A stretch of DNA of 64,000 nucleotides from Eutreptiella sp. 'Long Island Sound 2002' (lineage: Eukaryota; Protista; Euglenida), in NCBI GenBank assembly GCA_964036045.1, contig OZ038378.1, forward strand, positions 145,762,001-145,826,000. Direction: 5' to 3'. Below are positions 25,201 through 53,955 of this stretch, in pieces. Position 1 is the first letter of the stretch. Each line of letters starts with the position of its first letter. The notes below the pieces were generated by a model. That model made no database searches. It was not told the DNA's origin and saw nothing but the letters and a program-made list of their open reading frames with translations. A program made the translations under genes and the position numbers.

Positions 25201-28200
25201 GGGCCCCTGTCCCCCCGCCCCATTCGGCCAGCGCCTCCGCCTCCGCCGCAGCCGTTGAGTCTTCGGTGCTAAACTGCGCTTCGGCCTCTGCGCTGGTCTC
25301 CGCCTCCGAGTCGCTTGGGCTGAGGTCCGCGGAATCAACGCCCGGGCGGGCGGGGCTCGGCGGCGAATCGCGTGCCGCGCGGTGCGGCACCGCGGCGAAC
25401 CCGGGGGACGGCCCTGCGGGATCGGAGGCCTCGCTCTCGGAGGCCTCGGAGAGGGCGGAGTGCCCCTCGTGGGGGCAGGAGAGGTCCGACCCGGTGCCGT
25501 CCCCGCGGGGCCCCTGGTCGGCGAGGCCCAAGAGGGAACTGGCGGAGGAGTGGACCGAAGGGACGTCCTCCGCCGCCCCCGAGGCCCGGCCCCCGCCCCT
25601 CGTCCCATACGCCGGGGCCGGGGCCGGCGCCCCCCCCGGGGCCGCGCTCGGGGCCCCGGACGCCCGGGAGCTTCGCAGGTCCGAGGCCGTGAGGCCGGCG
25701 GGCCGACCGGAGCTTTGCAGGTCCGACGCGGTCAGGCCGGGGAGCCCCGTCGCGGAGGGCGAGGCGGCGCTGAGGTCGGCCCCCGGGGGCAGCGCGTGGC
25801 CCCGGAGGTCGCCGGCGCGGGCGCCGCCGCCGCGGTCCAGCGCGGAGGAGGCGGCGAGGGCTGCGGGGTCGTCGGCGCTCTCGATGGACATGAGGGAGTG
25901 GTCCGTCGCCGCGGAGGCCGCGCCCTCAACGGGGTAGTCCAGCGCGAGGCAGCGGGGCCGCAGAGGCTCGGCGGAGGGGTCCGCGGCGCGCGGGGCGGGG
26001 CCCGGGGCCGCGCCAAACCCCGGCGGCGGCTTGGCGGCGAACGCGTCCGGCGGCGCGTGCGGGGCCGGGGCGAGGCCGAGGCCCAGCAGCGTGCGCTCCC
26101 GGGAGGCGTCCGGGCGGAGGGTGGGCGTGGGGGGGTCGGTGGCCACGTCGACCATGTCCGGGCGCCGGGGCCGGCGGCGGCCGGCGGAGGAGTGCCGCGA
26201 CGCGGAGGAGCCGCGGGAGGACGCGGAGGGGCTGTGCCGGCGGTGGTAGGCCTCGTCGCCGCGGAAGAGGTGAGTGGCGAGGAGGCTGATGGCGCTCTCG
26301 GACGCGGGAGTGTCGGACAGGGAGATGCGCCACGGCCGTTGCGGGCCCGGGCCCTCGAGGTCGGGGGCGCCGGGGGCCGCCCGCGCGGGCCACGCGTGGT
26401 CGGCGGAGCTGAGCGGCTGGAAGCACCGCGTGTGGCGCGCGTCCTGCGACGCGTCCGTGGCGGACTCGCTGCAGGAGCAGAGGTGGGACGAGCTGCTGGA
26501 GGTCTGGCTGGTGTCGGCCAGGACGCGATCGAAGCCGTGGACCCCCGGGGCACTGGGGGCGCCGTGCGCCCCGGAGACGTCGCTGCCGGAGGCCGACGGG
26601 GCCGGGTCTGGCACGCGACCGGTCCGGTGTTCGGGGCGGTCGCGCGCGTTCCCGCGGAGCGGGGGAGGCGGACTGCCCTGCAGGAGGTTGCCCTCCGGAT
26701 GGGCCGCACCCTCGGCGTGGCTGAGGGCCGTGGCCATCGCGTACAGCGGAAGGGGGTCCGCCGTGGTCGACGCGTAGTGGACGGCCGCGGCGTCGGGGCC
26801 CGGGCCATGGGGGCCCTGAGGGGGCGGGGGGTGGCGCATGGGGCGGGGGGGCGTGGCCGGGAGGTCCGTGGGTGCGAGCGGTCGGGATGCCGCGGCGTCG
26901 GGCACCGGATGCGCCGGCGCGGCGTTGCCGTTGGGGGACGGGTAGAGGGCGTTGACCTGTGCGTTGAGCTGCTGCAGTTCGTGCTGCTGCGACCGGATCT
27001 GCGACTGGACTTGCGCGACCATGTCATGCAGTGGGCCCTCCTCTTGGTCCCGGCCGCCCGGGTACCGGCTACTGGCCGCCGCCCCGGCATCCCTCCCTCG
27101 CCTCTGGTCCTCCAGTTGCTTGTGACGCCGCTGCTCGTGATCCAGTTGCTCTTTGAGGGTCTCCAGTCGGCGCTCGATCTCCTCGGTCGACACAGACCAC
27201 GTCGATGCAGCCGAGACCGCGGACTGGGGCGACATGGTGCGGAGCGCGGGCGACCGTTTGACGGCGGCGGCGGGGCTCCGCAGCACCGCCGGATCGTTGG
27301 GATTGGGGCCGGTGCGGCCGTGCGGGTCCCACGCTGCAAGGGCCAGCTCGTAAGGGGCCGGGAGCGGGTCCGGCTCCACAAACGTCGTGGAGGACGGGGA
27401 ATAGGTCCGCAGTTCTTGCACCAAATGCTGCAGCCGCACGTAAGGGTCCTCCGGATAGCCGAGGTGGGCCCGGAGGGACGACGGCTCCGGCGGTGGAGGC
27501 AGGACTGCGGGCGGCTCCTGCGGACTCAGTGGGGCCTTTGCCCTTCCGGACCCTGCGTCGAGGCTGGGGCCCGCGCCGTGGTATCTCGCTTCGCCCATCG
27601 GGTCCTGAGGCGCTGCACTCTGTCGGGGGTGTGCGGCCATCGCATCGCTGGCCCGGCCCACCGCACCCGGACCCGGTGCCCCGTACGCCGCCCCAACACC
27701 GGGCCTCAGCAACATCTGCACGCGCGTCAACAGATCCGCCGCCTGTTGCCGCAGCTTGCACAGCCTCTCATCCGCCACGTCGTGGGGCAGAGGAGGCAGG
27801 TCCACCACCTGCAGCATTTGTAGGGTGGATGGGTCAACTGTGGAGCCACGAGGCTGCGGGGCCATGAATGGGGGCGCCGTATGCTGCGGATAGACTGCCG
27901 GCTGCCGGTACTGGTGCACCAGGCTGGAGATTAGCTCACTTTCCGTTTGGGCGGACGAGGACTTGGCCCGGCGCGGGGCGGCGGCCATCGTGCCCACGGT
28001 AAAGGTTGGGTACGGATGCTTCAGACTGATGGGCGGGTGTTGGGGCACCATCTTGACCTTCTTCGTGGCGGCCTTGCGGGTCGGATTGGCACCGCCTTGG
28101 CACCGCTCATCCCTCGCGGCGCTGCGAGCCGAAGCGTTGTGGCGGCGGGTTCGCGTTGCCGTCCCAGCGGCACTGACCTGCCCTTTGGATGCCCGTTCGG

Positions 28201-28444
28201 TGGGAAATGCACGTCCTTGAGGGGCGCCACCTCCAAGCTCCAAGGCCAATTGTGCAGCGACTTTGGCCTTCACCTCTTCGGGTACCAGAGTGTACCTGCC
28301 GCTGTTTGTAGAGTGCTGCAGCTTGTGCCCCGGCATGGGGCCGGATGCTCCTTGGGTCTTGCTGGCAACGTTGCCATGTTGCGTCCTTTTGTGGCCTTGA
28401 GTCGTCAAGGAATGATTCATCGACTTGCCAACTGGACCTTGCAA
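22244..28444 (-). CDS. large low-complexity/coiled-coil protein with DUF4378-like (CEP350/TRM-type) C-terminal domain; putative centrosomal or basal-body scaffold
   Basis: Uninterrupted 2066-codon GC-rich ORF (true start may be the ATG at 27988). C-terminus has [14 protein letters not shown] and [31 protein letters not shown], resembling the LFDCVNE and W...IFE.LL.DT motifs of DUF4378/CEP350. Confidence 0.75.
24580..25140 (-). repeat. coding 24-bp tandem repeat (AEAEARAQ) x15 plus degenerate flanks
   Basis: GCCCTC anchors every 24 bp from 24597 to 24933. Confidence 0.95.
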
Positions 28445-36860: not shown

Positions 36861-37622
36861 TCAGTCGTCGAGCATTGACAGGAGCGCCACCCCGCGCAAA
36901 CACCAGTGGTCCGGTCTGCAATCCGGGGGAGACGGCAGTGCCAGGGTCGTGATGAAGTTGGTGGAGTGCCCCGTCACGTCCAGCGTCCCCACGCGGGCGC
37001 TGGTCCGGTACACCGGGCAGCCGTACCGGTCCGGCGGCGGGGCCTGCGCCGCGAACCGGAGGTGCATCACCGGCATTTCCTGATGCAGCGCGTGCTCCTG
37101 GGGCTCCGCCAGGGCCGCCGCGCGCGCGTCCCACCGGGCCCCCTCCAGGAAGAGGCCGTGGAGGTAAATCCCCGCGTCCGGGCCCCGCGCCACCTCCTCC
37201 GGCCGCTGCGCCAGCACCTCCACGTGCGTCTGCAGGTCGTTGGCCTCCACCTGCGCTCGCTGGGCGTGCGCCCGCATCGCGCCCTCGATGAGCTGCTGCG
37301 GGAACGCGAAGGCGCCGAGCCAATAGGACGCCGGCGGGCCGCGCGCCCACGCCGCCGAGACGCGGCAGCGCTGCAGGAGGTCATGGAACCACGCGCCCAG
37401 GGGCTTGAGGGAGGCGTACGCGACGCGGCGCCACGCGTCCGGGACCCGGCCGTACCAGAGGTCCTCGAGCATCGCGTCCGTGTCCGGGGCCGCGGCCGCG
37501 AGGCCCTCGAGGACGCGGAGGAGGCGCTGCAGCGAGGCACGGATGGCCTCCAGAAGGCGGTTGAGGAACTCGGTCTGGGACCGCAGCGCGCGCGACAGGG
37601 GCCCTGCGGCGCCCTCCGGGAC
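36861..37622 (-). CDS. ART-NACHT-dynein fusion gene, exon 6 (dynein C-terminal domain)
   Basis: Acceptor TTTCCCCAG|GTC; GIYLHGLFLEGARWD, CPVYRTSARVGTLDVTGHSTNF and HWCLRGVALLSMLDD* are typical of axonemal inner-arm-type dynein C-termini. Confidence 0.9.
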   Translation of the reverse strand, partial: VPEGAAGPLSRALRSQTEFLNRLLEAIRASLQRLLRVLEGLAAAAPDTDAMLEDLWYGRVPDAWRRVAYASLKPLGAWFHDLLQRCRVSAAWARGPPASYWLGAFAFPQQLIEGAMRAHAQRAQVEANDLQTHVEVLAQRPEEVARGPDAGIYLHGLFLEGARWDARAAALAEPQEHALHQEMPVMHLRFAAQAPPPDRYGCPVYRTSARVGTLDVTGHSTNFITTLALPSPPDCRPDHWCLRGVALLSMLDD

Positions 37623-38225
37623 CTGGGGAAAGGGGCGGAGGGCGGAAGTAGGGGTAGAGGAAAAGGGGAAAGGGAGGCGTAGAGGTCCGCCAAAGCCGAA
37701 AGGAGGACTAAACCCAGAGCCACGTGGCACGCGCGCCAAAGACACCCCCTGCGCGCGCGCCTCGTGCGCGCCAAAGACAGCCCCTCCGCGCGCGCCTCGT
37801 CGAATAAGGCGCGCAGTCTCGGCCGAACTATGGACGGCGGTCGTCATCCACCCAAACACGCCCCAGTGGAGGTACAAGTAGAGGCAACAGTTGACGAAGG
37901 GATGTGGATGGAGAGCAGGATGCACCTGAACAGGGAAACCTCTAGACGTCCGCATTTTTGGGGCACGAAAGTAAAAGCTGAGCCGGCCGCCAGACAACGG
38001 CGGTTTTCTCATCACCGACGGCGGTTGACTGATCAACCGACAGCGGTTGGCGATTAACCAACAAACTTTGGCTGTTCGCCGCCGGCGGTCGGGGGCTCAC
38101 CGACAACGGTTGGCCAGTAACTGCCGGCGGTTGGCCTGCAACCGCCCGCCCGGGGGCGTCGGCGTTCCTCGGCAAAACGGACAACCGTTGGTGTCCCCAG
38201 GGACCGTCCTGACGCAGAGGCAGAC

Positions 38226-38631
38226 CTGGACCGACCCGTCCAGAGGGTCGGGCAGCCTCGCGAGGAAGTCCTTCGCTTTGGCCGCCACGAAGGCCGCGCT
38301 CTCCACATGTTCGCTTGCCTTGGGCTGCACGGCGACCAGGGCCTGGGCGAGGCGCTGGGACTCCCGCTGCCACACGACGCGCGCCCCGTTCGCGCCCAGC
38401 CCCAGGGCCGCGGGCGGGTCGTCGGCGGGCAGCTGCGACACGTGCGCCCGCAGGCGGTCGAGGTCGCAGCCCTCGACGGGGCCCGGGGGGTAGTACTGCC
38501 GGGCCGGGGCCCACTCGTAGCCGCCCGCCAGGCACTCGGGCCGCAGGAGGTGCGCGAGCAGCGTGTTCAGTGTGCGGCGGTCGATGTGGTCCGTGAGGTG
38601 GCCCCCCAGCACCAACTCGCCGAGGACGTAC
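38226..38631 (-). CDS. ART-NACHT-dynein fusion gene, exon 5 (AAA6 lid region)
   Basis: Acceptor TTCTCAG|G; (R)YVLGELVLGGHLTDHIDRRTL matches dynein LRYL.GE..YGG.VTD.WDRR; phase-0 donor CCAG|GTCTGC. Confidence 0.9.
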
Positions 38632-39545
38632 CTGAGAACACCCGCGGGGGCAGGGCTTGGCGCGAAGGGGCGGGGGTGCGATCGGGGAAATTCCAGAGCG
38701 GTTGCAGAGCGGCCGCAGGGGATGTGAAGCGGTTGGGGGGCGGTTACTGGCGGTTGGAAATGCGTTGGTTGGGGCGTCGGGGTATGGGAATTCCTTTGGG
38801 GTCAAGTCAGGGCCGCAGTGTTGGGGGGGAGGGGGTAATCCCCCCCTCCTTGAAGCGATTCCCTGCGCGGGGGGGGGGGGGTCATGGGTGGGGGGGTATA
38901 TGAACCAAATACCACAGGAATCGCGAGCAGTTCGCGCACTGCGGTCGATTTCACTGCCGCCCAACGTGGCATTTGGGTGTACGTTCGGCGAAGGTGGGCT
39001 TCTTCAGCATAACGTGGCGGTGTTTGGTGGTCTGGTTAGGATTTGGGGCAGTCGCGATGAAAACCGTCAACACTGGCTGTTGACCCCGGGTTTTCCCTTC
39101 GTGGAGCCCCCCAACCCCCATTGGCTTGTCTGACCCTGAAACCCACTTTTTTGTGCCTTCGGGCCCCCAAATAGAGGGGGCGGGGGTCCCAAGACCTCCC
39201 CCAAAGCGCACCCGCTGGCCTGGGTAGGGGGGCGAGAAGGGGGGGGGGGGTCTGGTATAAGCCGCACACACGCCCGCGGGGACTGCCAACGAGAAGAAAC
39301 CTTTTTGCGGAAACCGAACCGCTCGACATCTGGGGATTGTACAAGGCAATGCACGCAGACCTTTGGGGCCTGAACACGCCCTTCAGCCCCCCATTTGGAG
39401 GCAGGAGATCGCATGTTGGCGAGCCCACTTTTGCGTGCAAAACGGCAAATCCTCAGAAGATGCGGCGATTGAAGGCCAGCACACAGCTTTGGCCAGAAAA
39501 CATGACTGCGCATATCAATTGGGGGGGCGCTGAAGTGCAGTTCTA

Positions 39546-39857
39546 GAGGGTACGTTTGCCCGGCGCGCCCGGCATCCAAATGAACGTTCCAGCCATCTAT
39601 CGCAGTGCTTTACCCCCAAACATCACTCCCTCCTCTAGTCCGGGAACCCTAAGTACAAGCACCTTGTATGACTGTTGGCGATCAATGAAATTCCCATTTT
39701 TTCGCCCAATAAATGGGACGGTCACACGCACCCGACCCTTGTAGGCCCCATCATGGCCACCCACCTCAAAATCAAAGAATCCCCTTCTTGTGCGTGACGG
39801 ACCACTCGAGGGGCCAAAACTTTGCCCGGCGGATGCCCGGCGTTCTCGCATACTCTC
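39546..39857 (-). mobile_element. PIF/Harbinger-like derivative with a DDE fragment, inside dynein-gene intron 4
   Basis: Reads FDFEVGGHDGAYKGRVRVTVPFIGRKNG (near-identical to the 55420-55731 ORF); GCCCGGCG subterminal repeats; degenerate GAG(G/A)GTA(C/T)G ends. Confidence 0.7.
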
Positions 39858-40286
39858 CGAGACACGCAACCCCCGCGCGGGGGGGGGGGGGGTATTCTTT
39901 CGGACTTCGGGGGCATTTTTGGATTCTCTGTTTCATTTGGAGTATTTTGAATATACACGAGTCCGTGGGGTGAGATCTTCCTTCCCAATTTCACGTGTCA
40001 CATGGCTCAACAGCAGTTTCCGGGCGCCATTGGCCCCCACATTGCCTGTTCTCCATCGCTGGCCACTAGTCTGGGCTGGAAGGGGGGGGGGGGGCAAGAG
40101 GAGAGGGGGGGTCCGGTCTCACACGCAAGTGCTCCCCGGTGGATGGCACACAGCAATGCACGCAGACCCTGAGGGCCTGACACTCCCAATCGGAGGCTCG
40201 AGATCGCACGCAAAATGGCAAATCCTCAGAGGCCGCGCCGCCGAGGCTTGAGCCGGCAACCCACGGACCTCCCCGGGACCACGTAC

Positions 40287-43200
40287 CTGAGGGCGTTCAG
40301 CCCGTCCTCCGAGCCGCGTTGCTGGTCCCACTGCGGGCTCTGCCGGCGGAGGGACTCGAGGTGCATGAGGGCGGCGCGGGCCCCGCTGGCGGCGTCCTCG
40401 CACCGGAACTCGCCCACCGCGACCCAGCCCAACGGCCCGAACCGGCGCCGCTGGTCCGCAATGGCGTGGCACAGCACGACGGCGAAGATCAGCTGCTTCT
40501 CCCGGGCCGACCGCGCGTTCCACAGTTCATCCGGCGCGAGGGCCGCGAAGCGCTGCAGGAGCGCGCCGCGGACCCCCCGCGGGGGCTCGTCCGGGTACCG
40601 CAGGCTCAGCCGCAGGATGCCGATCGGGAACTGGGCCGTGTGGAGGACACTGCAGAAGAGACGGAAATCGCGATGCACCGCGCGACTGCTCTGGAGGTCG
40701 GCGACCGCGCGCTCCAAGACCGGCAGCCCCGCGGGGCTGCTCTCGCAGTTCTGGAGGAACACCCAGTGCCCCGCGCCCATCGCCGCGGGGAGCGCCGCGG
40801 CGCCGGGGCCCAGGAACTGCTCCATGTCCATCAGCGTCACGCGGTCCGCCATCGCCTTCTCGCGGGCGAAGGCCTCGAAGGCGGCCCGGCAGTCGGACCC
40901 GGCGGCCATCACGAAGACGATGGGCACGGCCGCCGCGGAGTACCGGAAGAGCTCCGCCAGAGGGACGGCGGGCGGCTGCAGCACCGCGGGGCCCAGGACC
41001 TCCAAAACCAGCTGCCGGAGCCCCAGCGCGAGCGACCCGGGGCGGAGCACCCGCGACAGGACCACCCGCTGCCACACCCCAAGCCCCAGCCCCCCCGGGG
41101 CCGGGGCCGCGGGGGGGCACTCCGCCTGCGCCCAGGCCTCCCACTCGCGGGGCCGCCCCGCCACCGCCCGGTCCACGCCCTCGAACCCCGCGAGCGCCCC
41201 GAGCGCCCGCAGCTGCGCCCACTGCCGGCGGGAGAGCCAGGGCGGGTGGCCGGCCCCGTCGCCCTCCCCCCCGTCCGGCCGCAGGAAGAACCCCCAGACC
41301 GGCCCCGAGATGGCGCCCTCGCGCGCGAGGACCTCGACGGCGAGCAGCACCGCCAGCAGCGCCCGGTCCGGCTCGTGGAGGCCGCGGCTGACGACGGCGT
41401 GGACGCGGGCGGTCGCGCCGGCCACGAGGGCCGGGACCCGCTCCGCACCGCCGGCCGGCGGGCCGAGGCCCTGCAGGGCCTTGCGGAACAGCCGCGCGAA
41501 CAGCTGCACGGAGCCGTGGTACATGTGGTCCAGGGCGGTCATCTTGGCGAGCGCGCGGTACATCAGGGCCCCCCGGCGGGCCACGGGGCGGTACTCCTCC
41601 GCGGCGGCCTCGGCCTCCGCCGCCACCGCCTGCAGCACGTCCGCCTGCCGCTGGGTCTCCTCGTACGTCTGCTGCGTGTGGGCGAGCGCGTGCGCCACGG
41701 CCTCGTCCTCGACCATCTCCCCGACCCGCGTCGCCAGCAGCGACAGCATCGTGTCCTCGAGCTCGCGCAGCTCCTGCCGGAGCCCGGGGTCGTGCGGCTC
41801 CGCCTCGTCGGCCGCCCCCGTCTCGTGCCGGACGACGGCCCCGAGCAGCTGGTCCTCGAGGGCCTCCGGGCCCACCGCGAAGTTGACGAGCGAGAGGTAC
41901 CCCTGGAGCGCGGCGGTGCAGTGGGGGTTGGCGGCGGTGGTGGTGAGGTACAGCCTGAAGCCCGGGTGGTAGTCCACCGCCGTGTCCCCGAGCTGCACCA
42001 TCACGCGGCCCAGGGTCTCGTAGACCCGCTTCTTGAGGAGCCCGTGCAGCGCCACCGGGACGGCCTCCGCGTCGCCCTCCAACAGAAACGGGAGCCCGGT
42101 CTCGATGCTCCTCCGGAGGGCGGCCGGCATGTCCGGGTCGGACGCGCGCGCGACCTGCAGGCCGCTCCCGCGCTCCATGTTCATGATCCACAGCCGGGCC
42201 TGCTGCTGCGGGTCGATCGCCAGGCTCCAGCTCGAGCTTTGGGTCAGGAGGACGGCGTTGTCCCGGGAGGTGCGGTCGGTGGGGAGGCCGTGCCGGCCCC
42301 ACTCCACGACCGCCAGCGGGTCCACCAACGCCCGCAGATCGAACGCCTCCTCGACCTGGACCCCCAGTTCGCCGCACTGCCGCGCCCAGTCCCGCAGCAG
42401 GTCCCGCCGGTAGACGTGGTCGAAGGGGCCGAGGTACGCGACGGCGCCCGCCGCCAGGAGCATGTCCCCTTTGAGCCGCTGCCGGGCCAGCCCGACGGTC
42501 CGCAGGCGCGCCTCCCACCGGCTCTTCTCGGGCGCGAGGGCCCGGACCAGGGCCGCCGCGCGCTCCCAACGCCCGTCGGCTCCGCCGGGGCCCGGGGCCC
42601 CGGCGGTGCCCTGCGCGACCATCTCCAGAGCGGTCAGCTGGTTCAGCCCCTGGCGGTACTTCTCCTGCTGCGCGTCCATGGCCTTGCCCCGCTCGTCCAG
42701 CAGCCGCACGTACGTGTCGAGCAGGCGGAGGAAGTGCCGGTTGGTCGTGTAGACCGGCCGCCTCAGGGCCTGGGAGAACTCCGCGGCCTTGCCCCGCACG
42801 GAGGCGTGCATGGCCGCGCACACGCGGCAGGCGACGGCGATGAACTCCGGGGCCTCGGCCTCCACGGCCCCGAGGACGTGCTCCGCGACGCGCAGCAGCG
42901 CCGGGCGGGACCACGGCTCGAGCCACACGATGTTCACGAGCTGCGAGAGGGCGGGGAACGTGCGGAAGCGCGCGCGGAGCTGGGCGCTCGAGGGCTGCAG
43001 CGCCAGGACGACGTGCACGTTCCTGCGGCACCGCTCTTCGAAGCGGGCGAGGTACGCGTCACCGGCGCTGGGCTCCGTCTGCCCCGATTTCCGGTCCATT
43101 GCACCGAAGAGAGTCGTGACAAGGTTGACGTCGTCGGGCTGCAGACCGCCCGCGAGCTGCGCGGTGGTCAGGAAATTGTTGATGTCGCTCAGAAACGCCT

Positions 43201-46200
43201 CCTCGACGATGTGCGTCTCCTCCATGAACACCACCACCTCGCGATCGTGGCACCCGGCCTCCATCGCCGCCGCCTTGAGGTCGCGGCGGAACTCCGCCAG
43301 CGCGTACCCGCTCGAAACCGCCCGGATCTCGCGCAGCTCCAGCCCCTTCATGAAGGCCGCCAGCCGCGTGAACAGCCGGCACCCGGACCCCGGCTCGCCC
43401 ACCAACAGGGCGCTGCCCCCGGGGAGACGGAGGACGCGGGCCACCTTGATCAGGTGGAGGACGGCTTCCTCGAGGAGGATCATGTTCAGCTGCTGGTGCG
43501 AGGCCGTGACGTGCATGTTGTAGGAGGCCAGGACGCCGGTCAGGGTATCGTAGATGGGGCCCAGGGCCTCGGCCTCCCGATAGTACGTGGTGCTCGCGGA
43601 GGTGCGGTCGAGGAAGTCGCAGAACACCAGGCGCTCGTAGCCGGGGGCCCAGGCGGTGGCGAAGTGCTGCTCCACGAGCGGCGGCAGGGCGCGCCACCAC
43701 CACCGCCGGTCCTCGTCCGCGCACAGGGGGTCGTGGAACACGCGGGTGCATTCGTGGATCCACAGCCTCAGGAGCGAGTCCGCCGTGCTGCAGTGGGCGG
43801 GCTGCACGGAATGCATCCCCTGGAACACGCGCTTGATCTGGTGGACGGAGTACGTGTAGTGGGGCTTGAGAGGCGTGGGGCGCATGGCATCGATCAGGGC
43901 CTCATAGACACCGATGGTCGCGCGCACCATCGCCGTGACCAGCCCCGCGACCTCCGGGGCGAAATTCGCGAAATGCCCTCCGTTGACCACCTGGAAGACC
44001 CGGTTCAGCGACGCCGGGCCCAAGGGCGCGGACGCGAGGCAGTGGAATCGGGACACGAGGCGCGTCGGGAGCACGCTGCGGCACCCACCTGGCGGAGCGC
44101 ACGCGGCTATGAGGGACAGCCCCTGGATCGTTCGCCAGTGCAGCCGGTCACAATCGTAGAACCCGCCATCGCCACGAATCTGCCGCAGGAGCTCAATTGA
44201 AGGGCACGTCCCAGAGCGCTCAAGGGCGGGCAAATTGACGTCATCCACGAATATCAACGTCCTCCGGCCCTGAGGCCCTGCGAGGACGTCCTCGGAAATC
44301 CAGTGCATGCGCGCCTCGATCCAACGCTGCAGATCCCCAGAGGAGGTGCGCAGGCCCATTTTGAAGTGGAAGGCCGCGTGCGCGAGCGTCGGGAGCAGGG
44401 CGGACACGGCGGTGGTCTTGCCGCCCGTAGGACCGTTGATAAGGACGCCGCGGTCCACCCGCAGGAGGTTGGTGAGGAGCGTGTGGAATATCACCGTCTC
44501 GACCGTGGGCACGAACGCGCGACTGTCCGTTGCGGCACTCAGTTCGCCGAGCGGGGGGAGCAGCTCCGTCCACCGGGCGAAGCTCATGGACTCGGGCCGG
44601 AAGCACCAGTCGTACACCGTGTGTTCCTCCGGAAAGGCGTCGCACACCGCCTGCACGACGGGCAGCAGCGCGGCGTGGCACTTCGCACGATCTGCGGCAA
44701 CGACGTTGCCGCACAGCGACCACACGAAGCTCAACGCAAGATACGCGTCGAAGACCCGCGCACGATCTGCGGACCGGCCGCTGCCATCCGCCGGTTCAGA
44801 CGCCGGTGAACCACACGCCGAGGTCAGCGGGCTTGCGGCCGGGCCGCTGGAGCGTCGCGCGCGCACGACGGCATCGAGGCTGCGGGGGCTGCCGCTTTCA
44901 TCCTCGTCCTCACTCGCCAGGAACGACGCCACCATAATGAGCAGCGATTCCACACGCTGCGCCTCCACCGTGGCGATGTCCTCCTTCGTGTTGGCCCGCA
45001 CAAACGCCAGCACGGGGTCGCAGTGCTCCGTGAGGACCTCCCAGGCCCGCCCCTGCAACCACCGACCGCCGTACGTGCCGGCCAGTGCCTCGCCACGGCA
45101 CCGGGCGATGGTGCGCCAGCCCTCCAAGTGGCTGGGTTCGAGACTCAGGACGCCGCAGCGGGAGATCAAGGCCGGAGTGGCCAGGGCTGTGCTGTCGGTC
45201 TCGAGGATGATGCGCATCGTACTCGGCATTTTGAGGGCCTCCCCCGTCCACAAGGTCAGGCACTTGTTGTCGTCGAGCATCGTCATCAGACCCGAGGCCC
45301 ACGACGGGTCCGGGCTGCCGTCCAGCACGATCCACGTGGCGGTGTCCGCGCTGGCGACGCCCTGGCGCACGCGATGCGCCAGCAGCCCGTCGCGCCAGGC
45401 GCCCGTCGCGGGGTCCGACCGCCCGTACAGCTCCGCGCAGGCGACCGCCGAGGGGTTGATGGCGCACGCCGCCACCCCGCGGCCGGCGTCGGCGGCGTGC
45501 AGCTCCGGGAACGCGCGCGCCACGGCCCTCCATGCCTCGGTCTTGCCGCTCATGGAGGGGCCCACGAGGACTAGCCCGTGCCGGACGAGGAGCGTGTTGT
45601 GCAGGGCCACGAGCTTCGCCACGAAGTCCGGCGGGGCGGCGCGGCCGTGGCGGTCCAGCGCGCGCCGGAGCACCGTCTCCAGCGCGGTGCCCTGCGCCGC
45701 CTCCGCGACGCGAACCCCCGGGAAGCACGACCTCAGGATCTCTCCGAAGACGGCCACGTCGGCGTCGACGAGGATCGGGAGCCACTGCCGGCGCAGCGCC
45801 TGGACGACCTGGGCCGCCTCGTCCTCCCCCGGCGCCGCCTGGCGCTGCTGCCCGGCCACTTTGCAGCACGCCTTGACCGCCCGCATCCCGAAGTCGTAGT
45901 GGTGCTGCCGGGACAACTGCACCGCGCTCATCCGCAGGACCTGGACTAGCCCCCGGGCGAGGGCGGCGGCGCGGCGGTAGCCCTCGCAGTACAAATTGTA
46001 CTTCGCGACGACCTCGTAGTCCGGGAGCACCATGGCGCAGGGGCGCAGCACGGCCTTCAGGGCCTCCGGCACCTCCGTGCCGCCCGCGCACCCGGGGTTG
46101 ATCGTGGCGAACAGGCCGAACGAGGCCTTGAGGGGGAGCCGCCGCCCGTCGAACCAGAGCAGCGCCTGCCGCGCGCGCAGGGCGCTGTAGACGGCGGTCG

Positions 46201-47872
46201 CCAGCGCGGCGAACGGGAACAGCACGTCGATGGCGATCCGGTTGAACTGGTCGAAGATGACCCACCCCCCCATCTGCGCGGCGGCGGCGGTCAGCCGCGA
46301 CAGCACCGCGAGCGCCATCCCGTCGTGGGCGTTGACGACGAAGAAGGGCCGGCCCGCGAGCTGCGCGAGGCCCTTCGCGGTCTCGGTCTTGCCCGTGCCC
46401 GCGGGGCCCACCATTCCCACGCCCATACCGGACTGCACGGCCTGCGCGAGGGCCAGCCAGGCGCGGCCGGTGACCGGCGTCCGGACCAGCAGCGCCCCGG
46501 ATCCGTCGTTGTACTCGTACCCGTGCGCCAGGGAGACGGAGCCGAGGTCCAGGAACACGGCCCCCTCGTGCAGGCGGTAGCGCGCCTGCGACACCCACTG
46601 GAACGACTCCGCCGTCGCGCCCTCGGCCCGGGACGCTTTGGCGCGCGCCGCGTGATCCCCCAACACGTTGATCAGGGCGTACAGGACACGCCGCTGCAAC
46701 GCCGTGAGCCCCGTCCGGGTGCGGTCCACCACCTCCTCGAACCGGTTCTGGAGGGTGCCGCAGGCCGCCGCCAACGCGCCGGGGTCCGCCGCCGCGTTGG
46801 CGAACGCGGCCTCCATCGTCTGCACGTACCCGATCGCGGTGGCCACCAGGACGCACTGGAGCGGGAACGACCAGTACCACAGCGGGCGCGGCATGGTCGC
46901 GTGCGCCTCCACGGCAGCGACCACTTGCTGGCGGACGGTTTGCCGGATGGCGTCCTCCAAGCAATTGGTCCAGGAGTCCAGCGCTTCGCCCTTGCACTGG
47001 ACGGCGTCCACAAACGTCACCGTCTCCCCGATTTTGCTACGCACCCCGCGAATGGCCTCCGGCGAGCCCACATCGGCCGCCGGCTCAGACATGAGATCGT
47101 GAACATCGGGAAAGAGGCCCACAACGGGCCGCACGTCCCCGTCGAGGAGCGCGTACAAGTCGGTGCTGGACACGCACCAGAGGCGCGGGGAGGCCCGCTG
47201 CTTGTCCTCGAGGAACGAGTCGTGGAAGGCCCGGCTTGCCTCCATAACGCACCGCGCGTCCTGCAGAAGGGCCGGCAGCCCTGCGGGCGCGCTGAGTTGG
47301 GCCACGTTCGCGGTGTAGCGCGCGCGCGCGTTGAGGGTGCAGAGCTGCGCGGCGGCGCCCGCGAAGGCCTTGGCCTCGGCCGGGCACTGCCGCTGTATCA
47401 CGGCCATGTCGAAGAATTCGTGCAGGGCCATCCAGTGGGACTGCACCGCCTGCCACTCTGCGACCACGCGCTGCATGAGCTCAAGCCGCTCGATCAGCGC
47501 GTCCGCGCGCGGCCGCATCGTCTCGGTCAGCAGCGGCGACGCGCGGCACGCGCGCGCGGTCATCAGGTTGTCCTCCAGTCCGGCGGTGACGGCCTCCCAC
47601 CCGGAGACCGTGTACCAGTCCCCCGCAGCGCCACGAAGCGGGTGGGTCTGGACCTCCAGGGCCTGGCACGCCTCCCCCGCCCGGGACAGGGACGTCGCGA
47701 GGTCCTGCTCTTTGGTGGCCGCCGCCGACTGCTCGTCGACCAGGCCCTTGTGCTCTGCGATGTGGCACGCCCACAAGTCCTGCAGCGTGAACGGGTCGTC
47801 GGCGGAGAACGGCGCCTGCAACCGCGTCAAGATCTGGGCCCAGTGCTTCTTCTGCAGGGCCCTGTTGCCCAC
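40287..47872 (-). CDS. ART-NACHT-dynein fusion gene, exon 4 (DHC_N2/linker, AAA1-AAA6; stalk deleted)
   Basis: 7586-nt open exon: GPAGTGKTETAK (AAA1), GPSMSGKT (AAA2), FVDDVNLP..IELLRQ (AAA3), ALLVGEPGSG (AAA4), GDMLLAAGAVAYLGPF and AIDPQQQA (AAA5), HWVFLQNC (AAA6). Confidence 0.95.
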
Positions 47873-48373
47873 CTGCATCGAAAGGGCCGCGAATCACGTG
47901 CAAAGAGTACCCACGTCCTTGTGTAAAGGGGGTGCGGCAGGGGTGGATGTAGTGAGGGGGGGGAGGGCAGGTCTCAAAGCGCTCTACACATGCACGTCCT
48001 GGTATGCATATGCAGCAATGTCCGGCAGTTCCACAAGATCATTGGTATGATACACGTGTGCTACCATACAATTGTCTGCACCTGATGGCCTTTGTTTTGT
48101 CAACACAACCGTGTTTGTATGCTACAGTACAGTGAGGTGGGGAGGGCGGGGGTTTGCAGAAGGGGGACATTTGTGCGCGCGCCTCGATTCCCCCTTCCGG
48201 GCAGAACGGCTTGGAGCTCCATACGCATTGCCCGCTTTGGAGGTCCAGCATCGATGGGGGGGGCGGGGGGTATTGGGCGGCAGTATCAGTGTTCGGTTCG
48301 CTTTATTTTTGACTGCATTTGGGGTCGGTGCTCTTTTGGATCGGGCTCCGTGTTTGGGGGGTTGGTGCCACAC

Positions 48374-48841
48374 CTGCATCAAGATCGGGAGGTACGCCTT
48401 CCCGTCGCGGATGGAGGCCAACAGGAGCCGGACCAAGGGCTCGTCGTGCGTCATCTCGTCCTGCATCATCATCTGCAACTCAAAGGCCCTCTGATAGTGC
48501 GCCCCCACGCCGTCGCTCACGCTCCGCACGTCCAGTCCCGTCACGGGCGCGGTGAGCCACAGCCGCTGCTCCCGGCGCCAGGACGCCAGCAGCGCCCACA
48601 CGGCGCTCCGGTGCGTGTGCCGCTTCTGAATGGCCTGGAGGGTGGCCTGGAGGGCCGCGTGCTCCTCGGCGCCCTCGAGCACGTCGCCCAGCAGCGTGAT
48701 GCTGTTGGCCGCCCGTAGGGCCTGGGCCCGCGCCCCGTTGTGGGACGCCTCGAGGGTCCGCAGCAGCGCCTCCCGGACCCCCGTCAGGTCCTCCCCACCG
48801 CCCTTGAGCATCCGGTAGATCTGGCGGAAATACCGCCGGAC
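48374..48841 (-). CDS. ART-NACHT-dynein fusion gene, exon 3 (NACHT tail into start of DHC_N2)
   Basis: Acceptor TTTCCCTCGCAG|GTC, donor ATGCAG|GTGTGG, 156 codons, phase 0 at both ends. AVWALLASW...WLTAPVTGLDV...IRDGKAYLPILMQ joins VGNRALQKKHW, the dynein LP....L.N.AL..RHW motif. Confidence 0.8.
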
Positions 48842-49282
48842 CTGCGAGGGAAACGGAGATTGCGTCCGGAAACAAGCGGGCGTTGTCTTACGTAGGTCGC
48901 GGGCTCCAGGGGATCGATCCACTCGAGGGGCCACCAAAAGCGGGGATTGTGAGCTCGTATCCCCAGCTCGAGGGGCCACCACTGTCACTTTTTTTTTCAA
49001 ACGCGCCCTACCGCAAAAGAACAAATACGCGCACCACAACCAGCGGGGCCTTAAGAGAAAAAAAAAAGCGTCCCTGAACGGCAGTTTTGCAAAAAGACCA
49101 CGTGTAGCTGATGTGCTCAACCATGGTTGGTGGTGATTGGCGGTTGGCGGTTGGTCGCCGCTGGCGGTTGGCGGCGGTGGGCGGTTGGTGGTCCCTTGGG
49201 GCGATCCTTGAGGGCGGTCCCCCCCCCCCAAAAAAACATCCAGTTCCTACAGGACCCCCCCTGACCACAACAGACATCGGAC

Positions 49283-50656
49283 CTGCTGGTCCTCGTGCAG
49301 CTGGATCTCCCCCAGGCTCTTGACGCTGCGGCGCCTGATGTGGTGCAGCAGGTAATGCGCCACGAGGTACTCCTGCAGGCTCTTGTGGCGGAAGCTGTAC
49401 GTCGCCTCCGGCGTGAAGTTGGCGACGCGCAGGGGGCAGCTCCGGAACAGGCGGTCCTCGCACAGGGCCCCCACGGTCCCGTGGGTCATGCCCCGCCGGT
49501 GCAGCGTCCAGGCCAGCGCCCCCGCGTACGCCACGCACTCCGGGATCTGCGCGGCCGCGTGCCCCTTCAGGCAGAACCAGCCCCGGATCCACTGCTCGTA
49601 CAAGTGGCCCTCGCTGCGGAACGTGTCCGCGTCGCGGCGGTTCTGGCAGTGCAGGTCCATGGCCATGAACAACTGGAACGGGTTGGCGAGGACCTTCGCG
49701 ATGGGGCAGCCCTGGATGATGCCCAGCACCTCCGTGGTCTCGGGGCTGGGCCCCGCGCACTCCGCGGCCTCCTCCGGCGCCTCCCGGTCCTCCGGCGTCG
49801 CCGCGTCGCCGCGCTGCGCGCGCGACCCCGCGTGCATCTGTCGGATGCGGCAATCCACGTACTGCGCCATTTGCCGGTGGTTGAAGGGCAGCAGGAACAG
49901 GGACTGGAAATCGTGGCCCATGCAGTTGCCGAACTTGTGCATGGCCTCGACGCGGCACGTCACGATCAGTTTCACACTCTGCCACTCCTCGAAGGCGTTG
50001 AGGGCCATCCACGTGCGCGCGGGCGGCTCGTCGCGGTGGTCCACCTCGTCGAGGCTGTCAAGGACCAGGACCACATTGCGCAGCCGGAGCTCCGCCATCG
50101 CGCCATCCGCGAACCCGAACGCGGACTGGAGGTAATCGACGATACCGTTGGGGTCGAAGACGGTCGCGCGCCCGTCGCGCTTCACGGAGGGCAGGGACAC
50201 GAACAGCCACACCCACCCGTCCCGCTCGCAGTCCTTGGCCAAATGCAGTGCGCAGGTGGTCTTGCCCATGCCCGCCTGCGCGGCAATCAGCAGCACGCTG
50301 TTCTGGCTCCGCAGCAACGCCGTGACCTCCTCATCCAGCGGGACCTGCGTGACGGAACTGCGGTAGCGTTTGGCCAGCGGCGGGACGTAGTTCTGCAGCA
50401 GGTTGTCGTAGATGAACCCGATCTGAGACAGGGCGTTCAGGTGCAGGTGGAGGGGCAGGGCCGCCGAGCCGGACTTGAACGTGATGATGTTGAAGTTGAG
50501 GGAGAGCATCTGCAGGATCGAGGCCGGGACCGCCGAGCACACCTCCAGCTCCAGGTTGGCGCTGTGCAGGAACTCCATCTCCTCAGGGAAAACGGACGCG
50601 AAGAACACGGCCTTGGCGGACTGGGACAGGACCATGCAGTAGGTCCCCTTCGTGAC
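49283..50656 (-). CDS. ART-NACHT-dynein fusion gene, exon 2 (ART catalytic end plus NACHT/STAND NTPase)
   Basis: SVFPEEMEFL (ART E-x-E); Walker A AQAGMGKTT, Walker B VLVLDSLDEV, KLIVTCR, LLPFN, LANPFQL, YSFRHKSLQEYLVAHYL (NACHT winged helix); 458 codons, phase 0. Confidence 0.85.
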
Positions 50657-50689
50657 CTGCATGGTGCATTTGGTAAACCCAGTCCCTCA

Positions 50690-51600
50690 AAACCTAGTAA
50701 ATCTCATGACATCTAGTAAAACGTGGTAGAATCTAGTGATTTCTCGCAAAACCTAGTAAAATCTCGTGACATCCAGTAAAACGTGAGTGATTTCTCGGAA
50801 AACCTAGTAGAATCTAGTAACTTCTATCAAAAGACCAAGTTAAAGTCTGTAGAATCCAGTGAAATCAGGTAAAACCAAGTAACACGTGGTAGAACCTCTA
50901 GTAGAACATCGCAAAAACCATTGTAAAATCCAGTAGACTCTCTGAAACCCAAGTAAAATTAAGGAAAATCTCTTAAAACCTAGCAAACTCCAGTAAAGTC
51001 CAGTAAAAAGTCTTGTAAAACCTAGTAAAATCTAGTCAGACCATCAGACCATAGTAATTTCTGGCAAAAAAAACTTGTAAATCCAGTAGAGTCGAGTAAA
51101 ACCAAGTAAAATCTAGCAGAACACAGCAAAACCTAGCAAAATCTAATGGAATCTAGACCTAGTAAAATCCAGTAAAGTCCTATCCTAGTAACATGTCGTA
51201 GAACATAGTACACTCTAGCAAAACCTAGTAAAATCCCGTCGAACATAGTAACTTCTCGCAAAACCTAGTAAAATCTAGTAAAATCTAGTAAAACCTGGCA
51301 ACATCTGGTCGAACTTAGTAACTTCTAGCAAAACCTAGTAAAATCCAGTAAAATCTAGCAAACCCTGGTAACATCTAGTAGAATGTAGTAAATTCTAGCA
51401 AAATCTGGTAAAATCCAGAACAATCTATGAACATCTAGTGGAACATAGTAACTTCTAGCGAGTAAAACCTGGTAACATGTAGTAGATCATAGTAAATTCT
51501 AGCAAAACCTATTCAAAATCCAGTAGAACATAGTAAATTCTAGCAAATCCTAGTGAAACCTAGTAGAATCTAGAGACAACCCAGTAAAATCTACCAGAAC
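50690..51600. repeat. degenerate ~10-bp CTAGTAAAAT minisatellite, block 1 (intron 1)
   Basis: Direct reading. Confidence 0.9.
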
Positions 51601-52089
51601 ACAGTCAATTCGCTGTTGGGGGGGACCAAACAACGGCCAAGGTCCATCGCCAAATGTCATCAGGAGTACCCACAGCACGAGGTCAAGAAGAGCCCAGAAC
51701 AATTCCTTTTGGTGGGCTAATGGGTGGGTGACTGAGGGCTTGGATGATAGTTGGGCCGAATGCAATTAACTCGGAAAAATGAACAAAGACGGCATCATCT
51801 CATGTGACCGCCCCATTCCCGCAATCGTGGGTGGTAGCAAACATACGCGGGCACGCAGAGGGCCGGCTGCTGCCGAACAGCAGAACCCGGTCATGCGTAA
51901 CAAGAACAAGGCACAGATGAGGTTCGTCGGAGCAAGAATGTGATGGGAGGGACCGGGAGAGAGTGTGGAGGGCTGGTTGATGGGGGCATGTCACGCATCG
52001 GGGTGGGGGAGGGGCAGCGGGGGCTGGGTACGGATGATGGTCAATGTGGAGGGCACAATCGTTGGAATGGACTATGGGGTCGGTTACCC

Positions 52090-52790
52090 TGTAAAATCTA
52101 GTACAACATAGTGAATTCTAGTTAAAAAAAAAACAGGAAAATCAAGTAGAATCTAGTAAAACCCAGTAAAACCAAGTAAAATGTAGTAGTGCCCAGAAAA
52201 TTTTGGTAGAAACTACTAATCCTCGTAAAATCCAGTAGAGTCTTGAAAAGCGTACAAAACTCTATTGGAACGAGCAAATTCCAGCAAAATCTAGCAAATC
52301 TTGGTAAAATCCAGTAAAAATACTAGTAAAACCTGGTAAATCATGTAGAAAATGGTAAATTCTAGCAAAACCCAGTAAAATCTAGTGAAACCTCGTGAAA
52401 ACCAGAATAATTCTGGTTTAACCTGCAAAATGCGAATAGAACATAGTAAATTCTCGCAAAATCTAGTAAAAAATCTAGTAGAATCTGGTAAACTTCAGTA
52501 AAATCTGCTGAACTGGCACAAACTGTTGAAATCTAGTGGAACATACTACAGTAAGCTAGTACAATTTGGGAGAACCTCGCAAAACCCAGTCAAAACCAGT
52601 AAAATCTGGCAGAAACTAGCAAAAACTATTGAAATCTGGTGGAAAATAGTAAATTCTAATAAAACACAGTATAATTTAGTAGAACCGAGGAAAATCTGGT
52701 CAAAACCAGTGAAATCTGGTAAAACCTAGAATCCACTGACATCTAGTAAGAACTAGCAAAACCTAGTACATTCCAGCAAAACAAGGCACC
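52090..52790. repeat. degenerate ~10-bp CTAGTAAAAT minisatellite, block 2 (intron 1)
   Basis: Direct reading; same orientation as block 1. Confidence 0.9.
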
Positions 52791-52917
52791 ATCCAGAAGA
52801 ATGTTGCAAAGCCTGGTAGAATCTGATGACAAAAATCGTTTGTCAAAGTTGCTGGAAAAATTTTGCAACTACGTTCTGGTGGAGACCCACTGTTTTCAAA
52901 AGAAGAAAGAACAAGAC

Positions 52918-53955
52918 CTGCATGCCGCCAAGGAACGCCTTCGCCTGGTCCCGGTCGAGGGTGAGGCTGGAGAAGCCGCCCCATACGATGCGCCGGCCGG
53001 TCTGGAAGTAGTCGGGGAGGGAGAAGGTGAGCCCGCGGAACAGCACGACCTCACTGGACGGGAGGCGCTGGATGGCCCGATCCACGTGGACCACGAAGGG
53101 GCGGTAGAGGGCCCATTCCTGCCGAAGTTTGGGCGGGGGGACCCGTACTGCCCCGAGATCGCGGCAGATCTGATTGCACACGGCGTATAACTGATGGACG
53201 TGGTCCTTCCCGTCCGCGTCCTTCAACTGTGCCGAGTACCACAGGATCGCGAACAAATCCGCGTCGGACATGGCGGGGACGCCGTGCGCAAAGTAGGTCT
53301 CGATGTACTGTCGCATGCGCGCCGGCAGTTTGGTGTTGCGGTGCCACTTGTTGCGTTCCCGGGTGACGCTTGCGATGAGGGTCTCCGCCCCCGGGGGGGC
53401 CTGGCGGAAGGCCAGCAGACTGTCGTCGATGTCGCTGAGGGCGGCGTCGATGATGGCCCTGGGGAATCGGCCGGGGTCCTGATTCGGCAAGTCCCGGACC
53501 CAGTCTCGGAGCGGGGGTACGGGGGCCTTCAAGTCGAAGTGCTGCGTGTAGAAATGTGCGTTCCCAGAGGAGCTATCGATACGGCCCTTCGCAGTACTGG
53601 TGTCGATGGGCGGGTCCTTGCCGGAAGGCTGCACATCAGGCGATCGCGTGCGCTCCTCGGTTGCGTCCCCTGCCTCCAGTACTTTGCCCTCATTGGCGAG
53701 CATCTCCTTTGCAATGGCATGCACCTGTTTCAGTCGGCGATACAAAGTGCGGTGCTGCCGTGAGCTGTGGGGCGTGCCACGGCCATGCACATCCTTGACC
53801 TCAAGCAGCAAAGTGTGGCCCGCGTCGATCCAGTTCATAAACCTCTCCATCAGCGACTCGGGCCATGCCTCGGAGGGCGGCTCAATGCCCTCAACATCCG
53901 ACCCCGAGACCGTGGTCTCAGAATCCGACTGGTCATCAAAGCAGCTGCCGGGCAT
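52918..53955 (-). CDS. ART-NACHT-dynein fusion gene, exon 1 (ADP-ribosyltransferase domain, first part)
   Basis: AILWYS...LYAVCN...RAIQRLP.SEVVLFRGL...GRRIVWGGFSSLT is the R-S-E (Vip2/ART-like) fold pattern; donor ATGCAG|GTCTTG; 346 codons, phase 0. An upstream exon is not excluded. Confidence 0.8.

Follow-up and report, generated by a model that had tools for sequence, protein, structure and literature searches.

A euglenid gene joining ADP-ribosyltransferase and NACHT domains to a stalkless dynein ring, a candidate NLR-like switch

Few eukaryotic machines are as conserved as dynein motors. Here, we asked what kind of gene carries such a motor behind an ADP-ribosyltransferase (ART) domain and a NACHT domain, as is the case in a stretch of 64,000 nucleotides (nt) from the euglenid Eutreptiella sp. 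'Long Island Sound 2002' (GenBank assembly GCA_964036045.1, contig OZ038378.1, positions 145,762,001 to 145,826,000 of the forward strand). The whole stretch is called the window below, and positions refer to it unless another locus is named. The gene lies on the minus strand between 53955 and 36861. An earlier note on this DNA had proposed six exons, 11634 nt and 3877 amino acids with compatible phases. The coordinates, the borders and the single TGA of this proposal were reproduced exactly. The parts of the gene are as follows; the slash within a repeat marks the intron border.

Exon 1, 52918..53955, minus strand: 346 codons; N-terminal part and first half of the ART domain.
Intron 1, 50657..52917, minus strand: 2,261 nt, guanine-cytosine (GC) content 0.40; 9-bp direct repeat ATGCAG/GTC at both borders.
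Exon 2, 49283..50656, minus strand: 458 codons; second half of the ART domain, NACHT nucleoside triphosphatase (NTPase), winged-helix region.
Intron 2, 48842..49282, minus strand: 441 nt; GCAG/GTCCG at both borders; nested high-copy repeat.
Exon 3, 48374..48841, minus strand: 156 codons; fusion exon with the NACHT-family tail and the start of DHC_N2.
Intron 3, 47873..48373, minus strand: 501 nt; GATGCAG/GTG at both borders; nested repeat of ~170 bp.
Exon 4, 40287..47872, minus strand: 7,586 nt; remaining linker, AAA1-AAA6, start of AAA_lid_11.
Stalk stump (within exon 4), 42563..42631, minus strand: 23-residue Gly/Pro/Ala-rich loop in place of coiled coil 1, the microtubule-binding domain and coiled coil 2.
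Intron 4, 38632..40286, minus strand: 1,655 nt, phase 2; CTCAG/GTACGT at both borders.
Exon 5, 38226..38631, minus strand: AAA_lid_11 positions 62-139, followed by what its location suggests is the beginning of the dynein C-terminal domain.
Intron 5, 37623..38225, minus strand: 603 nt; CCAG/GTC at both borders.
Exon 6, 36861..37622, minus strand: Dynein_C positions 60-308 of 309 and the TGA stop.

The six exons (1038, 1374, 468, 7586, 406 and 762 nt) sum to 11,634 nt, that is 3,877 codons and a stop, with phases 0,0,0,2,0. All five introns start with GT and end with AG, and the sole stop in the spliced frame is the terminal TGA (36861-36863). In the frame of the model, the GC content at third codon positions (GC3) of exons 1 to 6 was 0.82, 0.95, 0.96, 0.94, 0.96 and 0.94. 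The introns had third-position values of 0.40-0.66, were flat across codon positions, lacked periodicity and contained in-frame stops. A periodicity scan of the whole window revealed no extra coding signal in intron 1 or in the 7 kb upstream of the start codon. The signal of the model is thus well above chance, as indicated by the GC3 contrast and by domain E-values down to 7e-89. Domain and homology searches were run on the exon pieces separately. The domain order given in the earlier note (ART, NACHT, DHC_N2/linker, AAA1-6, C-terminal domain) was recovered exon by exon with Pfam, and the ART domain was recognized through paralogs.

Do the ART-NACHT part and the dynein part belong to one gene? 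Each of the introns was found to interrupt a unit of homology that continues on the other side. Intron 1 splits the ART domain, which is uninterrupted in intronless paralogs; in an alignment with eight of these, exon 2 takes up exactly where exon 1 leaves off, without gap or overlap. Intron 2 splits the conserved tail of the NACHT module, and the gene, like the paralogs, runs from HKSLQEYLVA through V-L-R-F-F to AANSI(S/T)LL across exons 2 and 3. A hidden Markov model built from the paralog tails alone matched only the exon 3 frame among the 871 open reading frames (ORFs) of the window, with an E-value of 5.5e-4 (next best 1.5). Intron 3 interrupts DHC_N2, of which positions 1-83 lie in exon 3 (residues 68-155) and positions 85-401 in exon 4. 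Likewise, residues 73-154 of exon 3 align to residues 829-909 of PDB chain 9e5c_6c, and exon 4 resumes at 912. Intron 4 interrupts AAA_lid_11 (positions 2-59 in exon 4 and 62-139 in exon 5), and intron 5 interrupts Dynein_C, which exon 6 resumes at position 60 (60-308 of 309, E 8e-73).

The fusion itself lies in exon 3. Residues 3-51 of this exon are the conserved tail of the ART-NACHT family, ending with AANSITLL (48689-48712), and the switch to dynein takes place between residues 51 and 68, right after this motif. The NACHT-to-dynein join is contained in a single exon, and the fusion is therefore independent of any splice call. Exon 3 is unique in its own genome. Codon bias is even over the NACHT and dynein exons (GC3 of 0.94-0.96 in exons 2-6). 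At the DNA level this is one gene, given the unbroken homology over all five junctions, the join within exon 3, the codon bias, the repeats at the introns and a sound assembly.

These intron repeats are a feature of the whole locus. All five introns (window 37615-52925) are flanked by a direct repeat of 7-11 bp across CAG/GT, namely ATGCAGGTC, GCAGGTCCG, GATGCAGGTG, CTCAGGTACGT and CCAGGTC. The repeats resemble target-site duplications and would suit introns that were inserted into a frame that used to be uninterrupted. In the same genome, the other dyneins and the ART-NACHT paralogs each consist of one open frame. The introns as wholes are not repeated elsewhere in the genome, and only nested pieces of them are. 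One such element in intron 3 (47956-48132, ~170 bp) is 91-98% identical to its other copies, with at least 993 candidates at first look. The nested repeat in intron 2 (~49030-49260) measures ~150-220 bp, has an internal tandem structure and gave at least 2,405 candidates.

An assembly chimera was named in the earlier note as an outcome that would overturn the fusion. In two samples, the locus is covered by short-read DNA contigs that show no differences and break only at the nested repeats in introns 2 and 3. One DNA contig (run X2) spans 49162-53600, including intron 1, with zero differences. Sequencing runs in which the locus was found look like DNA, as they cover its introns evenly. An ENA contig of 617 kb carries an identical stretch of 27.6 kb and may share source data with the assembly. 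A chimera was rejected as the principal explanation of the locus: homology bridges both repeat-bearing introns exactly, and exon 3 alone holds the fusion.

The N-terminal module was characterized next to its paralogs. The first ~115 residues of exon 1 gave no domain match; they are followed by a helical N-terminal part and the first half of an R-S-E ADP-ribosyltransferase. The Arg motif LFRG (53032-53043) and the Ser motif FSSLT (52960-52974) lie in exon 1, and the E-x-E motif, within EEMEF (50570-50584), in exon 2. In the alignment of eight paralogs, LFRG, SSLT and EEME are in register with VLYRG, SASS and EEME. The gene retains 47 of the 63 columns that are invariant in the ART family (75%); leave-one-out controls gave 81-98%. 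Pfam found no ART match on the two exon pieces of the gene, and on a paralog PF01129 reached 18.9 bits, under its cut-off of 22.3. A family profile searched against PDB sequences returned no ART, only AbiV matches at chance level (E 0.06).

The fold was examined on the ART domain of paralog L027, because the domain of the gene itself is interrupted by intron 1. The structure model had a mean predicted local distance difference test (pLDDT) of 80.4 and a predicted template modelling score (pTM) of 0.82. Foldseek gave 113 PDB matches with E<=0.001, the best with E 3e-8, and the 50 matches listed, which include Tre1, HopU1, ART2.2, C3, Vis, ExoS and the XopAI effector, all belong to the ADP-ribosyltransferases or to proteins closely related to them. 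This model supports, indirectly and through the paralogs, the assignment of the N-terminal module as an R-S-E mono-ADP-ribosyltransferase, and its activity is predicted. In this enzyme class the E-x-E motif goes with arginine as acceptor; the motif thus predicts arginine specificity. Weaker matches to the exon 1 ART (E 1e-4 to 1e-7) were also seen in the same genome inside giant ORFs of 3,240-6,837 codons, at C1:199216871, C2:175100270, C21:37064069, C8:4775457, C12:21439823 and C11:14527405.

In exon 2, Pfam identified a NACHT domain (PF05729) with 33.6 bits, above the cut-off of 26.7. Its Walker A (AGMGKTT, 50255-50275) and Walker B (VLDSLDE, 50045-50065) are both intact. With a NACHT that bears both Walker motifs and an N-terminal effector domain, two parts of a STAND/NLR-type protein are present; the C-terminal repeat array of that type is absent from the gene according to Pfam, and the dynein motor stands in its place. 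PADLOC models gave no convincing match.

The genome (2.28 Gb) contains a family of related genes. We found 85 exon-level matches to exon 2 and 64 to exon 1, many of them adjacent in one ORF of 1,000-2,200 codons, and exon 2 is 35-45% identical to the paralogs. Eight paralogous ORFs were read, and five were scanned with Pfam over their full length. Four of these five have ART-NACHT followed by a WD40 array, and a pentapeptide-like stretch before the array is visible in the paralog alignment. The fifth (L025:2705-9373, C20) is a 2,223-codon ORF with no Pfam match at all; its ART- and NACHT-like parts are 45% identical to exon 2, and its C-terminal 1,500 residues are also without a match. In paralog L026 (4297-6050) the WD40 array consists of 13.9 tandem units of 126 bp whose DNA matches at 93% without indels. 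Near-identical WD40 repeats of this kind are typical of fungal NWD-type STAND genes. The sole named relative of the ART-NACHT family was E. gracilis EG_transcript_271, which is only 34-48% identical to any locus here; the genome therefore belongs to another species or strain than that transcript.

One of the four ART-NACHT-WD40 paralogs carries a kinesin motor at its N-terminus. It is a single ORF of 2,192 codons at C19:~26511800-26518380 on the plus strand (locus L024:2-6379), in the order kinesin, ART-NACHT, pentapeptide-like stretch and WD40 repeats. The motor has the P-loop GQTGAGKT, SSRAH and DLAGNE, and matches Pfam Kinesin with an E-value of 1e-81. With this paralog, a microtubule motor has been joined to the family a second time and independently; it was the sole fusion of its kind found in the genome.

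The C-terminal part of the gene is, by its domain content, a true dynein heavy chain homolog with a linker, six AAA modules and a C-terminal domain. Pfam gave the order DHC_N2, AAA_6, AAA_5, AAA_7, AAA_8, AAA_9, Dynein_heavy, AAA_lid_11 and Dynein_C, with AAA_6 as the best match (E 7e-89). PDB and database searches pointed to single-headed inner-arm axonemal dyneins as the closest matches, with PDB scores of up to 1,337 bits (9e5c_6c, 9y6s_7C and 8glv chains). Over the linker and AAA1 (an 826-residue part of the protein), the nearest dynein in the same genome was only 27-29% identical. The earlier note had proposed placing the ring in a dynein phylogeny. In our maximum-likelihood tree the gene has an end branch of 6.04 changes per site, ~12x the median of 0.5; a subfamily placement was not obtained, because the branch is long and the composition skewed.

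The motor is clearly not of the conventional kind. Pfam found no DHC_N1 tail on exons 1-3, and ~870 ART-NACHT residues occupy the place of the dynein tail. The stalk and the microtubule-binding domain are gone: ~252 aligned residues (both coiled coils and the binding domain between them) are missing after ORF residue 1749, and PF12777 matches a 56-residue remnant with an E-value of only 0.0075. In AAA1, Walker A (GPAGTGKT, 46385-46408) is intact, and Walker B reads FDQFNR (46238-46255), whereas the six references share FDEFNR at this site. This E->Q exchange lets AAA+ proteins, and dynein among them, bind ATP while blocking its hydrolysis; AAA1 is therefore predicted to bind ATP and should hardly hydrolyse it. 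The P-loop of AAA3 (44414-44434) is shorter by one residue, and that of AAA4 (43376-43399) has lost its Lys/Arg. With the stalk lost, the E->Q exchange in AAA1 and degenerate P-loops in AAA3 and AAA4, the protein can presumably no longer work as a microtubule motor. Among the columns invariant in six canonical dyneins, 49-89% are kept per module, about 63% overall; controls kept 82-98%.

How could these parts work together? In STAND/NLR switches, a C-terminal module keeps the NTPase shut and senses the ligand, and oligomerisation turns on the N-terminal effector. The plan of the gene, with an enzyme, a NACHT and a large C-terminal module, is of this type, and switch behaviour is predicted for it. 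The dynein ring sits at the very position of the pentapeptide-like and WD40 repeats in the scanned paralogs. These paralogs are ART-NACHT-WD40 proteins, and the event can therefore be read as a WD40 sensor swapped for a tail-less dynein motor. The earlier note had described it from the other side, as a dynein tail replaced by an ART and a STAND switch. The lack of DHC_N1 and the ~870 residues in its place agree with that description. The role that the note gave to the ring, as a sensor, decoy or scaffold in immunity, would be a prediction.

On balance, we lean towards one NLR-like ART switch of ~3,877 residues in which a retired dynein motor does the sensing or gating. If the gene is expressed as one protein, as we infer, the dynein ring and linker would take the place of the autoinhibitory, ligand-sensing domain. 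The NACHT module would be set free when a ligand or partner binds, or when ring and linker change in a nucleotide-dependent way, and would then exchange nucleotide and oligomerise. Oligomerisation of the NACHT could switch on or cluster the ART, and the activated ART would label target proteins, possibly with an immune or cell-death output. In a bolder version, which we hold to be doubtful, euglenids would possess an expanded NLR-like system with ART output into which motors were built twice, as a stalkless dynein ring unable to hydrolyse ATP at the sensor position and as an N-terminal kinesin, and the ring would be an integrated decoy or an AAA+ ligand sensor. Equally tentative is the idea, part of the same version, that the ring detects parasite or viral factors that seize host dynein, or reports the state of the cell's own dynein, and so triggers NACHT assembly and ADP-ribosylation.

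Several observations weigh against a single switch protein with a sensing ring. No transcript or peptide showing the joined protein was found in the data searched, and the RNA signal amounts to one low-depth contig. The 32-mers across the exon 2/3 and exon 3/4 junctions were not found in JGI metagenome contigs, and the protein collections searched contained no transcript-derived protein of the gene. Long ORFs arise easily in such GC-rich DNA, as seen from an antisense ORF of 1,293 residues. The linker region searched against 5.8 billion clusters returned canonical dyneins only, at <=27% identity; exon 3 searched against 1.84 billion representative proteins returned only itself, and exon 2 only paralogs of the same assembly and one short contig. 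In these collections no ortholog was found against which purifying selection could be gauged. The gene is single-copy and, so far, appears species-specific. A mRNA for the dynein alone, or for ART-NACHT alone, could arise from the same DNA by trans-splicing. The sensing role of the ring is read solely from its position in the protein.

The sole RNA library found was an estuary metatranscriptome, in which one low-depth contig of 214 nt fell on exon 1 and the remaining matches only on intronic repeats. The contig is identical to 52915-53122, so that the match ends 3 nt past the donor. These 3 nt (GTC) are common to the start of intron 1 and the start of exon 2. Beyond this point the contig has 6 more letters, which disagree with the intron and could not be read. 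The pattern is as expected of a spliced exon 1/exon 2 read, and we take it as a hint only.

Euglenids trans-splice a leader onto their mRNAs, which keeps alive the explanation that the locus yields two expression units: an ART-NACHT mRNA ending in or near intron 2, and a dynein mRNA trans-spliced at the acceptor of exon 3 or 4. We searched the genome with a 24-nt sequence that we take to be the Euglena spliced leader and found 5,458 copies, on both strands and scattered along the chromosomes; the reversed control gave 0. A retrocopy origin of the gene was rejected, as no leader-like sequence was found within the window. Besides these thousands of leader copies in a euglenid genome, two units would agree with a stop reached after 11 codons of read-through from exon 2, with a Met at residue 11 of exon 3 and an ATG 6 nt upstream of exon 4, and with the lack of RNA evidence linking the exons. 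However, exon 3 by itself encodes, without a change of frame, both the tail of the NACHT family and the first part of the linker. A dynein starting from exon 4 would miss linker positions 1-83, an ART-NACHT protein stopping after exon 2 would miss its conserved tail, and GC3 is alike (0.94-0.96) in exons 2-6. We consider two units improbable. We give as little credence to a silent or decaying chimeric gene left by a rearrangement, in which the odd features of the dynein are neutral damage. Such a relic would account for the extreme divergence (branch 6.04 vs median 0.5), the loss of stalk and catalytic residues, the single copy with no ortholog found and the near absence of RNA signal. It is difficult to reconcile with 3,877 codons free of stops and frameshifts, full-length profile matches, and a GC3 of 0.94 next to introns of ~0.6 at the same locus. 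Moreover, 49-89% of the dynein-invariant columns per module and 75% of the ART-family-invariant columns are kept, and divergence of this extent without constraint would have wrecked the frame. With frame, codon bias and invariant columns kept in this way, a new function under partial constraint seems a better fit than decay.

A further explanation accepts the joined protein and places it elsewhere. The gene might code for a non-motile ciliary dynein heavy chain, similar to DNAHX, DNHD1 or DNAH12, that acts in or near the flagellum and uses ART-NACHT as a regulatory "tail" for labelling axonemal or transport proteins. The motor does derive from single-headed inner-arm axonemal dyneins, according to the best PDB and database matches, and the kinesin-bearing member of the family suggests a link to the microtubule system. 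The literature contains non-motile dyneins whose AAA1 is degenerate and whose microtubule binding is impaired (PMC11785096, PMC11949491). Yet the scanned members of the ART-NACHT family end in WD40 arrays, which is the plan of STAND receptors, and the branch of the gene is far longer than those of canonical axonemal dyneins. The non-motile dyneins described so far are also not known to lack the tail used for docking and pairing, and here neither DHC_N1 nor another tail is seen. We regard a ciliary role as unlikely, and a NACHT-controlled ART switch with the dynein ring at its sensor position remains the reading that we prefer.

The gene was compared with known systems. It shares the N-terminal enzymatic effector and the central NACHT with intact Walker A and B with NACHT-WD40 proteins of STAND/NLR-like type (fungal NWD/HNWD, TEP1-type), and the tail motif AANSI(S/T)LL with the ART-NACHT-WD40 paralogs of its own genome. 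In contrast to both groups, it has a dynein motor of ~3,000 residues instead of the pentapeptide-like stretch and WD40 array. With single-headed inner-arm dyneins (DNAH1/3/6/7/12 type) it has in common the full linker, the six AAA modules, AAA_lid_11 and the C-terminal domain, and it is collinear with 9e5c_6c from residue 829. It differs from them in lacking the tail, the stalk and the microtubule-binding domain, and in the E->Q exchange in Walker B of AAA1.

DNAHX, DNHD1 and DNAH12 are, like this gene, dynein heavy chains with motility features lost. None of the three is known to lack the dynein tail, and none of them is joined to NACHT or ART. In DNAHX, AAA1 is poorly conserved and locked in the ATP-bound state, the stalk and binding domain are disrupted, and the protein pairs with another heavy chain; DNHD1 misses the catalytic Walker B residues and sits in the axoneme (PMC11785096). 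DNAH12 is described as being without a microtubule-binding domain (PMC11949491). These departures from the dynein plan are still tied to cilia or flagella in the literature examined. Some animal dyneins do have NACHT entries in their precomputed Pfam lists; these entries were rejected as parallels, as they are not an N-terminal NACHT, and the tails of P0014 and P0021 show none.

RNF213 is a giant cytosolic protein of cell-autonomous immunity with an enzymatic output and a dynein-like ring of six AAA modules without a microtubule-binding stalk. That ring is dynein-like in fold only, the output is an E3 ligase, and there is no STAND switch. The ring studied here, in contrast, is a homolog of dynein heavy chains, and the likeness is a functional analogy only, not membership. 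With R-S-E enzymes such as ART2.2, C3, HopU1, Tre1 and ExoS, the gene shares the fold, as judged from the paralog model, and it keeps the Arg, the Ser and the E-x-E. Unlike these enzymes, its ART domain is predicted to be intracellular and is built into a STAND protein rather than secreted, and its sequence similarity is under the Pfam cut-off.

The earlier note stated that no ART-NACHT-dynein protein had been described, and neither the literature nor the protein collections that we searched gave a match. In full-text searches that combined NACHT with dynein or ART terms, or with Euglena, neither this architecture nor the family of ART-NACHT-WD40 proteins was found described, and no description of an ART as an NLR effector in euglenids was found. 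The gene thus combines features of STAND/NLR-like proteins and of non-motile dyneins, a conclusion supported for its anatomy and predicted for its function. If correct, the gene would be one of the rare cases in which a motor, here a dynein ring without tail and stalk coupled to a STAND switch and an enzyme, has been taken over for regulation or sensing. NLR-type proteins would, in addition, have a wider choice of domains to stand in for repeat arrays. Taken with the kinesin paralog and the other ART-NACHT-WD40 genes, it suggests that euglenids have an innate-immunity-like or signalling system not described before, and it offers a concrete protein for asking how an AAA+ ring can gate a NACHT switch.

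The window also contains a neighbouring ORF at 22244-28444 on the minus strand. It has 2,066 codons and 74% GC, and its sole Pfam match is Fibrinogen_BP, a match of low-complexity repeat type that lies below the cut-off.

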